Positions 10,037 through 13,506 of a stretch of DNA of 64,000 nucleotides are shown in pieces. The notes under the pieces were generated by a model. The model saw nothing but the letters and a program-made list of their open reading frames with translations. It searched no databases and was not told where the DNA came from. The position numbers were made by a program, and so were the translations under genes. Source of the stretch: Octopus sinensis. Taxonomy: Eukaryota. The stretch is taken from contig NC_043017.1 in assembly GCF_006345805.1 (NCBI RefSeq), positions 5,766,001-5,830,000 of the forward strand, given 5' to 3'. Position 1 is the first letter of the stretch. The number at the start of each line of letters is the position of its first letter.

Positions 10037-10079
10037 AAAGTAGGTCAGTCGGTTAGTCAGCCTCTGGAATGTAGGTCAC
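10037..10079 (+). promoter_or_regulatory. Candidate tandem ROR/Rev-erb response elements, copy 1
   Basis: AAAGTAGGTCA (10037-10047) and AATGTAGGTCA (10068-10078) both match WAWNTRGGTCA. The island recurs at 13464-13506. Function is inferred only. Confidence 0.45.
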
Positions 10080-10642
10080 ACATACATGCATACATACTTA
10101 CATACATACATACACACATACATACATACATACATACATGTATACGTGAGCAGCTAAATACATATTTTGTTGTTCTTTTGAAAGAACAGACAGGCATTAG
10201 ATGTGGTGTATCGTGCTGTGTGTATATATGGTGTATATGTGCGTATTTTGTTATTTCTATGTGTATTTTATAGCTATCTTTGTTGTGCGTGTATGAGTCT
10301 ACGTGTGTTATCTCTATGCGCGCGCTTGTGTCTATGCGAGTATTATTATATATATATATATATATACATCCATATAATATATTATATATACACACACACA
10401 TGCATATATTTTGTGTGTGCGTGCGTGGTGTGTGTGTGTATGTGTGTGTTTGTGTGTGTGTGTGCGCGCGTACGAGCGTATTTGTGGATCCGAGTGTATG
10501 TCATGTATGTTTGTAATAATATATTTGTATATATCTCATCTTTATATAATTATATACACACAAGCTTATATATATATATAGAGAGAGAGAGAGATCACAC
10601 AAAACACAGTGAAAGAGAGAGAGAGAGAGAGAGAGAGAGAGA

Positions 10643-10802
10643 GACGGGTTTGTTTCAGTTTCCGTCTACAAAATCCCCCCACAAGACATAGGTCGGCTCT
10701 GAGCTGTATTAGAAGAAGCTTGTTCCAGGTGACGCGCAGTGAGACTGAACCCTGAACTATGAGATCGGGAAGTAAACTTCTTACCACACAGCCACGCCTG
10801 CA
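10643..10802 (-). mobile_element. SINE family B, 5' half
   Basis: Reverse complement of the family B head and core up to gacggaaactgaaa. Confidence 0.85.
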
Positions 10803-10974
10803 TCTCTCTATATATTCGGAAGTATTCCTTGCTGCCAATTTATTCCCTGACATACTTCCATGAGAAACAAGGTGTTTTTGGTTGGATTCAGTTTTTTAAT
10901 AAACAGACACACTCACTCACATGCTTATATGACACTATATTAACTTTAACGTATTGTAATTCAATTCTCTACTG

Positions 10975-11160
10975 TTTTCATCCTTTCGAGGTCGATGAAA
11001 TAAAGTACCAGTTGAGTGCTGATGTCGATGTCATCGATTGGCTGCTTTCCCCAGAATTTCGGACGTTCTGCCTATAGTAGAAAGAATTAGGGCTTTAAAA
11101 ATATCATTGGTACGGCGGTGAGCTAGAGGAATCGTTAGCTCGCCGGGGAAAATGCTTAGG
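10975..11160 (+). mobile_element. Two SINE family A fragments (3' part 10975-11088; head 11113-11160)
   Basis: Degenerate matches to the family A core/tail and head. Confidence 0.65.
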
Positions 11161-11164
11161 GCCA

Positions 11165-11822
11165 TGCTCTTACCAATTGTTGGAACATTCTAACCCATAC
11201 ATCTTGAACAATTCCCGGTGTAATTACACTGCCACATTGTCATGGCGTTTTTGTACTCCTTTTGGGCCAGGTACGAGCATCCACCTGTCGCAGATGATTT
11301 TCCACATAGTCACCCCAAATGTAACACTGATATCTTAGCAATGCTACACTTGATTTGAGTTGGTTCGTAAAGCTTGTTCTTGCGCAGCAAGAATCAGTCC
11401 TATTTCCTTCTTTAAAAAAAACATATCTCAGCCATCTCCTTCATTCTAAATCAGATTCATCTAAACTTTCCGTTTAGGACTTTCTCTTCCAGTTGATTTT
11501 TACTCCTCATATTATATGAAACCTGGTGGGTTTCCTAACTGTGACTGATTACCTTCTCACTCGGTGCAGCCTGCAGTATTCTTTCATCACTATTTCTCAT
11601 GTAAGGACTTCAATTCCTTCATGACACTATCCACTATTCCAACCAATCCTCTTCCAACTTCTTTCCCAAGCAAGTAAATCCCCGTTACGTTACTTCTAGT
11701 ATGAGGGCACTCAAGCATAGCAATTATCTTCCTAGTTGTATTATCCATGTCGACCAGTTCTTTCTTTGTCCATTTCATAACGTACCACACCTAAAGCCGA
11801 AGCGTTGATCCCTTTAATCAGG
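11165..11822 (-). mobile_element. Degenerate RLE-type non-LTR retrotransposon fragment (RT thumb to CCHC region)
   Basis: ORF 11590..11790 KWTKKELVDMDNTTRKIIAML..HTRSNVTGIYLLGKEVGRGL resembles the thumb motif W..EL..+DRKTRK..HPKSDV.RLYLPRK.GGRGL. Downstream, broken frames give a KRHDNVA-like motif. Confidence 0.8.
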
Positions 11823-11855
11823 TCCCAACATTTAGCTTGAATCTACATAACTTTT

Positions 11856-11965
11856 ACTACTACTACTACTACTACTACTACTACTACTACTACTACTACT
11901 ACTGCTGCTGCTGCTGCTACTACTACTACTACTACTACTACTACTACTACTACTACTACTACTAC
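11856..11965. repeat. (TAC)n/(TGC)n trinucleotide array
   Basis: Direct reading; lies between the two RLE fragments. Confidence 0.95.
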
Positions 11966-12203
11966 TTCCTCGCCATATCGCGGTTCACCTATCGTGGTTC
12001 ACCTATCGCAGTTCATTATTTAAGCATGCGTCGGTTCCTCTGTGGTGCTATTTTGCATTTGCAATAAAATGAATACATGCAAATTATTAAAATAATTTTT
12101 AAAAAGTACAGTACAGTACTGTTTCAACTTCGCGGATTTTCACCTATCGCGGAGAAGGGGGCGGTTGGAACGTAACACCCGCGATATCTGAGAGATTACT
12201 GTA
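11960..12203. mobile_element. Tigger/pogo-like MITE
   Basis: Right end cccgcgatatctgagagattactgTA is the reverse complement of the left tcctcgccatatcgcgg. The outer left TIR merges into the TAC run. CAGTAA-type terminus with TA flank. Confidence 0.7.
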
Positions 12204-12204
12204 T

Positions 12205-12873
12205 TTCTCTTTATCTTAGGCTTATTGGAGCTCCTCGAGTCTTGCATGCGGAGCGGGCTTGCTACCTGCAGCCTACGGTTCCATGCTATCCGTTCTTTAC
12301 AGCTCTCTAATACTTTCCTGATTATTCTGACTGTGCCAAGGAGGCAAGCCTCTTGCAACAGTTCTACTGGGCACTCTATTCCAATTTCCTTTATATTCCT
12401 CTTGATACCTTCAGATACTGTTCCCAAGGGCCCAACAATAATTGACACTATCTTCACCTTCCTCATTTTCCATCGTCGGGCTATTTCGTACTTAAGATCT
12501 ATCTATCTTTTCGCCTTCCTTCTTCACTATTCGTGGGTCAAGGGAGCATGCAACATCAACTGTATAGCACATGTGGTGCACCTTGTCCACCATCTCTGGG
12601 TCCGGTCTGTTATGCTCTAGCACCTGATCTGTTTGGATTGGAAAATCCCAGAGGATTTTGCTAGTCTCCGACTCCGCCACTCTCGGTGGTTTGTCCTCAT
12701 ACCACGCCTTGCCTCTCTCTAGCCCCCACCCCCACTTTTCACACAGTTTCCAATGAAGCCCTTTCTCTACTTGATCGTGTCGCCACAACTTGTAGTAGTT
12801 TTGGGCAAGTCTAGGGCATTTGTTCGTGATATGGGCAATGGTTTCATCCACTCTATTGCAGATGCGGCACAGG
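12205..12873 (-). mobile_element. RLE-type (R4/Dong/NeSL-like) non-LTR retrotransposon 3' end
   Basis: [16 protein letters not shown] zinc knuckle, RHD, ILWDFPIQTD..HNRPD..VDVAC restriction-like endonuclease motif, then VKIVSIIVGPLG..LLGTVRIIRKVLE (ORFs 12492..13028 and 12140..12466). Frameshifted. Confidence 0.92.
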
Positions 12874-13124
12874 TGTATGTGTGTGTAAGAATGTGTGTGT
12901 GTGCATACGTTCATGTATATATTCTTGCATATATTCATGTATATATACATATGTGAGTGTGTGTGTGTGTGTGTGTGTGTGTTTGTGTGTGTACGTGTGC
13001 GTGTGCATATGTGTTTTAGCGAAGTCATGGTTGATACTGGAGGGAGGACTGCTTATTCGCTAACAATGTATCGTCAATTTCTAAAGAATTGTCAGCAGAC
13101 ATCCAGTAATGCCATTTCACACCA

Positions 13125-13385
13125 ATTCTACCATTAATGCAGTCACACCACCAACCATCACCACCAGCAATCTTACTATCATATACTTTCGTGAATCTCA
13201 TCAATATCTCCTCGTCTTCATCATTATTGTCATCGTCATCGTTGTGGTCGTCGTCTTCGTCATCGTTGTCATCATCATCATCATCATCATTATGATCATC
13301 AACATCATCACCATCATCATCGTCATTATCATTATCATTATCATTATCATCATCATCATCATCTGCAGCAGCAGCAGCAGCAGCC
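13125..13385. repeat. (CAT/CGT/CAG)n trinucleotide array
   Basis: Direct reading. Confidence 0.9.
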
Positions 13386-13463
13386 TCTAATAGCTGTAGC
13401 GAGAAGAAAAACAAAAGCTGTGCCTCATATTTTTGTTTAATATAATTAGTGTCAGTTTGTGAC

Positions 13464-13506
13464 AAAGTAGGTCAGTCGGTTAGTCAGCCTCCGGAATGTA
13501 GGTCAC
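13464..13506 (+). promoter_or_regulatory. Candidate tandem ROR/Rev-erb response elements, copy 2
   Basis: AAAGTAGGTCA (13464-13474) and AATGTAGGTCA (13495-13505); one substitution relative to 10037-10079. Confidence 0.45.

Follow-up and report, generated by a model that had tools for sequence, protein, structure and literature searches.

A 43-bp island kept in both copies of an old local duplication in Octopus sinensis is a candidate cis-element with paired nuclear-receptor-type half-sites

The DNA analysed here is a 64,000-nucleotide stretch of the Octopus sinensis genome (assembly GCF_006345805.1, contig NC_043017.1, forward-strand positions 5,766,001 to 5,830,000), hereafter the window. 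Within it, a non-coding unit of ~0.75-1.2 kb was long ago duplicated locally in direct orientation, and each copy of the unit carries a nearly identical 43-bp island. Both the duplication and the conserved island are real. The single most likely reading, to which we give a probability of about 0.35, is that the 43-bp block is a candidate for a constrained, protein-binding cis-element retained in both paralogues. Coordinates throughout are positions within the 64-kb window, on the plus strand unless stated otherwise.

A pattern scan of the window with AAAGTAGGTCAGTCGGTTAGTCAGCCTCYGGAATGTAGGTCAC gave exact matches at 10037-10079 (copy A) and 13464-13506 (copy B), both on the plus strand. The two islands are identical at 42 of 43 positions (98%, z=19). 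The lone mismatch is T at 10065 in copy A and C at 13492 in copy B, giving CTCTGG versus CTCCGG. This is CTGG versus CCGG, a CpG transition, and copy B carries CCGGAA where copy A has CTGGAA. No third copy with up to three mismatches was found on either strand of the window (0 expected from 100 shuffles), and a word-size-7 BLAST of the window returned no weaker copies. The initial annotation had reported this 43-mer in two places with one mismatch, between far more diverged flanks. The exact pattern matches at both coordinates bear out the first claim, and flank identities of 77% and 83%, with indels, bear out the second.

Both 43-mers sit in one colinear direct duplication, with copy A at 9025-10235 and copy B at 12949-13692. 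The order in both units is a TG block, a unique block, a CCA/CAT microsatellite, a GCA run, a TAATTA-bearing unique block, the 43-mer, an ACAT/CA microsatellite and a last unique block. Block by block the units are colinear, and copy A is ~1.2 kb long, inflated by a 568-bp CAT/CAC microsatellite, compared with ~0.74 kb for copy B. Alignments were scored against dinucleotide shuffles, and the TG block, the three unique blocks and the core all lay above them (z 3.3-19). The TG-rich opening block pairs 9026-9098 with 12950-13018 (z=3.3; family D7), the first unique block 9137-9182 with 13084-13133 (83% identity, z=10.8), and the second 9947-10023 with 13381-13452 (77%, z=6.2). The third pairs ~10174-10234 with ~13622-13691 in a gapped local alignment (z=4.1). 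No homology was found beyond the unit ends (left z -0.5, right z -0.8). These are colinear blocks in the same orientation with defined limits, as in a local segmental duplication, and the four colinear flanking blocks show such an event rather than two unrelated insertions.

The two units probably began as a tandem duplication, which transposon debris split at a later time. A TA/TG-rich junction at 10316-10462, after copy A, resembles 12862-13005, before copy B (68.7% over 147 columns), which weakly suggests that the units were once adjacent, both stretches being of low complexity. The probable origin is unequal exchange between the bounding TG/TA-rich arrays. The copies, initially adjacent, would then have been separated by ~2.4 kb of transposon fragments. 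At the same relative place within the units, copy A has a (CAT/CAC)n microsatellite of 568 bp (9374-9941) and copy B a (TCA/TCG)n microsatellite of ~146 bp (13218-13363); their divergence in length and motif reflects array turnover after the duplication. On the minus strand these arrays yield pseudo-open reading frames (ORFs) that are M/V-rich from 9374-9941 and D-rich from 13218-13363. The core is directly followed by (ACAT)n in copy A and by a CA-rich run in copy B.

The conservation of the island is moderately above expectation. In the 172 aligned columns, the simulated chance of any 43-column window with at most one mismatch was 0.002, 0.012 and 0.058 for background identities of 75, 79 and 83%, respectively, and the probability of at least 42 of 43 identities per window ranged from 4e-6 to 3e-3. 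The lower backgrounds are more realistic, because local alignments ignore indels and unalignable stretches. All repeat pairs in the window that are 70-84% identical served as an empirical control (70 pairs, 11.6 kb of aligned sequence). A 43-column window with at most one mismatch occurred only in the island pair and in two pure microsatellite runs, and the best competitors in complex sequence had two to three mismatches. The initial annotation's view that the island was kept better than its flanks is thus upheld to a moderate degree, by P values of 0.002-0.058 and by the position of the island as an outlier among the 70 repeat pairs.

These numbers also bear on neutral rate heterogeneity, under which the island would be the lucky tail of the distribution, noticed for its recognisable motif. 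At a background of 83%, such a window has a ~6% chance of arising in this pair, and many repeat pairs and windows were screened before the pick. At the more realistic backgrounds of 75-79%, which still ignore indels, the chance falls to 0.2-1.2%, and no other complex-sequence pair of 70-84% identity in the window came closer than two to three mismatches. We consider this explanation unlikely, yet far from negligible.

The preferred reading, a constrained cis-element, draws further on the pattern of conservation around the island. Drift has reduced the identity of the two units to ~77-83%, with indels, whereas that of the 43-bp block is still 98%. Conservation is modular: an 11-nt block, ATAATTAGTGT, is identical at 11 of 11 positions between copy A (10013-10023) and copy B (13442-13452), and it is followed by a diverged linker with a 2-nt indel between the copies and then by the island. 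The TAATTA within this block (10014-10019 and 13443-13448) lies 17 nt upstream of the island in copy A and 15 nt upstream in copy B. The identity of the ATAATTAGTGT block alone is not significant (P 0.02-0.13). Modular conservation of this kind is more in keeping with binding-site blocks than with a single conversion tract.

Such a tract is what a second explanation without function invokes: a recent short-tract gene conversion would have homogenised 43-47 bp, with one CpG transition since. The copies are close, in the same orientation and probably adjacent originally; the identical tract is contiguous, spacer included, and the lone difference is of the fastest substitution kind. However, the conversion tract would be very short, and flanks of 77-83% identity with indels and microsatellite length differences make a poor substrate for strand invasion. 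Nor does a single tract explain a separately conserved ATAATTAGTGT block past a diverged, indel-bearing linker. Gene conversion is a doubtful account of the island in our view.

If the block is a constrained cis-element, it may act as a small composite enhancer or silencer module present in both paralogues. Its most obvious features would be a pair of monomeric nuclear-receptor half-sites, each extended 5' by A/T-rich sequence, that share an orientation and lie 31 bp from each other, together with GGAATG between the half-sites and the homeodomain-type TAATTA 15-17 nt upstream. As an enhancer, the block is a modest candidate predicted from its motifs. Five sites in the window match the pattern WAWNTRGGTCA, where 2.06 would be expected, and four of the five lie within the two islands. 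All four also fit the stricter WAWNTAGGTCA (R=A), with one shared orientation and 31 bp from start to start. In copy A, they are AAAGTAGGTCA at 10037-10047 and AATGTAGGTCA at 10068-10078, and in copy B, they lie at 13464-13474 and 13495-13505. The edges of the island are the outer edges of these two matches. By sequence, each copy thus holds two monomer sites as defined for the ROR response element (RORE) and the Rev-erb response element (RevRE), (A/T)A(A/T)NT(A/G)GGTCA. The fifth match, TATTTAGGTCA, is isolated at 18863-18873 on the minus strand and illustrates the frequency of the lone motif.

Three motif claims of the initial annotation bear on this description. Two WAWNTRGGTCA matches 31 bp apart in each copy were predicted, and all four were located. 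TAATTA was placed upstream of both copies and is found there, inside the fully identical ATAATTAGTGT block. A degenerate direct repeat with 2-bp spacing (DR2), AGGTCA-gt-CGGTTA, stands only in part: a hexamer is present after 2 bp, but CGGTTA fails RGGTCA, and the arrangement is a product of the 8-bp repeat period of a decayed tetranucleotide repeat.

Several observations weigh against a constrained cis-element. The 43-mer is a cryptically simple period-4/8 sequence lying between microsatellites. Its period-4 autocorrelation, noted for copy A, is 0.46 against 0.24 expected (p=0.0006), and the first 21 nt, with GTAG GTCA GTCG GTTA GTCA, reach 0.65 at lag 4 and 0.77 at lag 8. RORE-type matches 1 and 2 of the island are identical to each other at 10 of 11 positions and lie inside this repeat, and thus are not independent. 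The 20-nt spacer between the 11-mers is conserved at 19 of 20 positions (P 0.008-0.12), as much as the motifs themselves. Whatever preserves the block therefore acts on the whole and not on the receptor sites alone, and selection on the two 11-mers is insufficient as an explanation. The same 43 bp also hold GGAATG (TEAD type), CCGGAA (an ETS core, in copy B only), TTAGTCA (an AP-1 site but for one base) and, on the minus strand, GCTGAC.

The setting and the statistics count on the same side. The surroundings are transposon fragments, and 13.7% of the window bases lie in perfect simple repeats of period 1-6. The stretch from 6.5 to 18 kb yielded nothing but transposon debris and microsatellites, with no detected coding exon, promoter or Pfam domain, although small exons and distant genes could escape such an examination. 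Pfam domains were absent from the non-repetitive ORFs of at least 40 aa at 6.5-18.2 kb and from the 10 most protein-like ORFs of the window. Moreover, the statistics are moderate and were obtained after a striking case had been selected, so that chance is reduced but not eliminated; in a scan of many windows, each with many repeat pairs, occasional chance islands are expected.

It is tempting to speculate that the block is specifically a paired response element for ROR/HR3 and Rev-erb/E75, possibly circadian, which would be a subset of the cis-element reading. REV-ERB binds WAWNTAGGTCA as a monomer and RORs activate at the same sites, and two nearby sites or a RevDR2 make recruitment of NCoR possible (PMC6956161, PMC10712084). 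Two closely spaced ROREs are a known working arrangement (PMC6956161, PMC10712084), which counts in favour of the cis-element reading. In the Bmal1 promoter, two ROREs lie at a distance of 26 bp (PMC6956161), and in an insect, the firebrat, HR3 and E75 act on cyc, the Bmal1 orthologue (PMC4263706). Both sites of the island fit the strict monomer consensus (PMC6956161), and like those of Bmal1 they are two same-orientation matches a few helical turns apart, at 31 bp here. In contrast to those of Bmal1, the sites of the island are putative; they are set in DNA rich in transposons and microsatellites, where no exon could be detected close by, their spacer is conserved too, and they arise within a period-4/8 cryptic repeat.

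The specific assignment to these receptors is built on motif matches. With ~2 single matches expected per 64 kb, a genome of 2-3 Gb would, by extrapolation, hold chance pairs within 50 bp in numbers of the order of 100, and the non-independence of the two sites applies here as well. The RevDR2, a Rev-erb homodimer site, consists of an extended half-site, 2 bp and a second AGGTCA. The island resembles it in that AAAGTAGGTCA is followed by a hexamer after 2 bp, but in both copies this hexamer is CGGTTA, which agrees with RGGTCA at only four of six positions, and the likeness is an expected product of the GTNNGTNN repeat. No clock gene, or any other gene, was detected nearby in the ORF and Pfam examination of 6.5-18.2 kb. 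On this evidence, a paired ROR/HR3-Rev-erb/E75 element is quite improbable. The full proposal, a lineage-specific, tandemly duplicated cis-regulatory module with Bmal1-like paired ROR/HR3-Rev-erb/E75 monomer sites, would have a slimmer chance still.

Surveys of mollusc nuclear receptors reportedly mention HR3 and E75. If the island were a working paired RORE, it would offer a defined DNA element with which to ask whether molluscan and cephalopod clocks use the ROR/Rev-erb mechanism, known in vertebrates and suggested in a basal insect, and likewise for HR3/E75 hormone-type responses. It would mean a RORE-based transcriptional loop in a lophotrochozoan, with a concrete element to examine. If it is not a working RORE, the island is a caution: in DNA with ~14% simple repeats, decayed GTAG-GTCA-type repeats readily yield AGGTCA half-sites and 'DR2' spacings, and a lone conserved island in one paralogous pair is weak evidence of function.

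Considered as a constrained cis-element of whatever kind, the island is comparable to paralogous conserved non-coding elements. It shares with them a short near-identical block, drifted flanks, modular conservation and a linker indel. Known cases, however, are defined by cross-species conservation and linkage to duplicated genes, whereas the island comes from one window.

The density of repeats in the window raises another explanation, namely that the unit belongs to a family of dispersed repeats. It could be a non-autonomous element that contains microsatellites, a long terminal repeat (LTR), solo or paired, or the 3' end of a short or long interspersed nuclear element (SINE or LINE). Conservation of the 43-mer would then be a property of the element, or the copies would simply be young. 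The window is packed with interspersed repeats, the 43-mer runs directly into (ACAT)n or a CA-rich array, like the conserved 3' tails of some LINE/SINE pairs, and direct repeats 2.7 kb apart resemble an LTR pair. Against this, the window holds only two copies of the 43-mer, even by word-size-7 BLAST, and no further convincing copy of the flank blocks. The sequence upstream of the other 14 (ACAT)n arrays in the window is unrelated, and the TA/TG junction common to both units suggests a tandem origin. Membership of a repeat family is rather unlikely, though it retains some weight.

Two specific forms of it were rejected. The units resemble an LTR pair in being direct repeats of 0.75-1.2 kb, 2.7 kb apart, but they lack the hallmarks of one: no TG..CA ends, primer-binding site, polypurine tract, clear target-site duplication or gag-pol was seen, and the sole 10-mer shared at the unit boundaries is the low-complexity TATACATATG. 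The interior is non-LTR and SINE-like debris, and the only protein-like sequence between the copies is opposite-strand debris of a non-LTR ORF2 without a Pfam domain. Stringent-type LINE/SINE partners, for example eel UnaL2 and UnaSINE1, have conserved 3' tails followed by short tandem repeats. The island is similar to such tails in having a conserved block of ~40-60 nt and then a tetranucleotide or dinucleotide array. It differs in that only two copies are present in the window and the other (ACAT)n arrays lack the block, with unrelated sequences before all 14 of them. In addition, its homology runs ~1 kb upstream via microsatellites that keep their order, and folding predicts no stem-loop.

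At the RNA level, the block could serve as a small RNA or a structured element, or as a signal (splice or branch site) in a transcript that is not annotated. The sequence AG|GTCAGT is similar to a splice donor and is preceded in both copies by a T-rich tract and then TTAG, and the minus strand can be read as branch-point-like CTGAC/CTAAC repeats. The putative mini-exon, however, is poorly conserved and differs by 2 nt in length. Rfam gave no matches at the gathering score; an E-value search returned only microsatellite-type microRNA models far below the cut-offs, the sub-threshold matches being mir-297-type on the (TGTA)n array. ARAGORN found no tRNAs, and folding energies on both strands were no better than those of shuffles (z -0.43 to +0.71). 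With all three lines negative, we rejected a structured non-coding RNA, and an RNA-level role altogether is very improbable. Also rejected, for want of support, was a visual likeness to a tRNA D-arm and to 5S rRNA (TCAGTCGGTTAG). So was a coding exon or micro-exon, since the ORFs across and beside the islands are of low complexity and unconserved from one copy to the other, D-rich versus M/V-rich on the minus strand, and have no Pfam match. Two island-spanning ORFs have no exact match on record.

Searches outside the window returned no further copies of the island. Exact scans for the 43-mer gave no matches in the metagenome (two patterns), prokaryotic-genome and viral collections, none of which contains cephalopod genomes, and the exact pattern had no match in the full text of papers. 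The three open translations of the 43-mer found no candidate in a set of 5.8 billion proteins, a negative that a control renders uninformative. The control, a translated SINE-like repeat that occurs at least 10 times in the window, returned one 543-bp contig of an ENA metagenome (ERZ23499442; L005), which matches the SINE-like repeats of the window at 84-87% (86%). With a single contig found, the protein set holds a mere trace of this or a related genome. Among the public sets examined, only this contig shares the SINE-like repeat.

The debris between the copies spans 10643-12900. It includes an interspersed repeat (10643-10815), a SINE-like copy (10976-11083) and, on the minus strand, two non-LTR ORF2 fragments (11593-11790 and 12143-12900). 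Both fragments derive from the ORF2 C-terminus and are out of order relative to each other, and neither has a Pfam match of its own. Relatives of fragment 12143-12900 number 75 (35-65% identity); almost all come from ENA assemblies, some on eukaryote-sized contigs. Two relatives that were looked up have neighbouring ORFs with RVT_1 and Exo_endo_phos domains (reverse transcriptase and endonuclease). Four loci with relatives of the ORF2 fragments (L001-L004) have neither DNA similarity to the window nor the 43-mer. Further along, ORFs at 15770-16006 (plus), 18182-18778 (plus) and 18352-18564 (minus) show a likeness by eye to the end of a LINE endonuclease domain and a GIY-YIG-type (Penelope-like) nuclease region; this is unconfirmed, as Pfam gave no match.

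The window as a whole has a G+C content of 37.6% and a CpG observed/expected ratio of 0.79. Its content of simple repeats is extreme: Tandem Repeats Finder lists 186 rows, with long arrays of (AGAT)n at 8459-8806, (GAT)n at 42163-42535 and (CT)n at 43103-43608. The SINE-like repeat is ~160-240 bp long and present in at least 10 copies in 64 kb at 75-94% pairwise identity, with no tRNA-like head detected by ARAGORN. Its copies lie at 3055-3289, 4675-4859, 10976-11083, 19678-19838, 23311-23479, 28590-28823, 47274-47508, 48541-48699, 49551-49699 and 60520-60639.

Downstream of copy B, an inverted repeat pairs 14839-14961 with 15141-15264 (~120 bp, 79-85% complementary, ~180-bp spacer) and may be a small insertion like a miniature inverted-repeat transposable element. 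Larger inverted arms at 35756-36145 and 36509-36885 (~390 bp, 93% identical, ~360 bp apart) could be a foldback or an inverted duplication, and their family also occurs at 6866-7230, 34225-34382, 10643-10815 and 15341-15478. A 100-N assembly gap at 56472-56571 directly adjoins a copy of a repeat (56143-56471) with 91% identity to 23567-23890.

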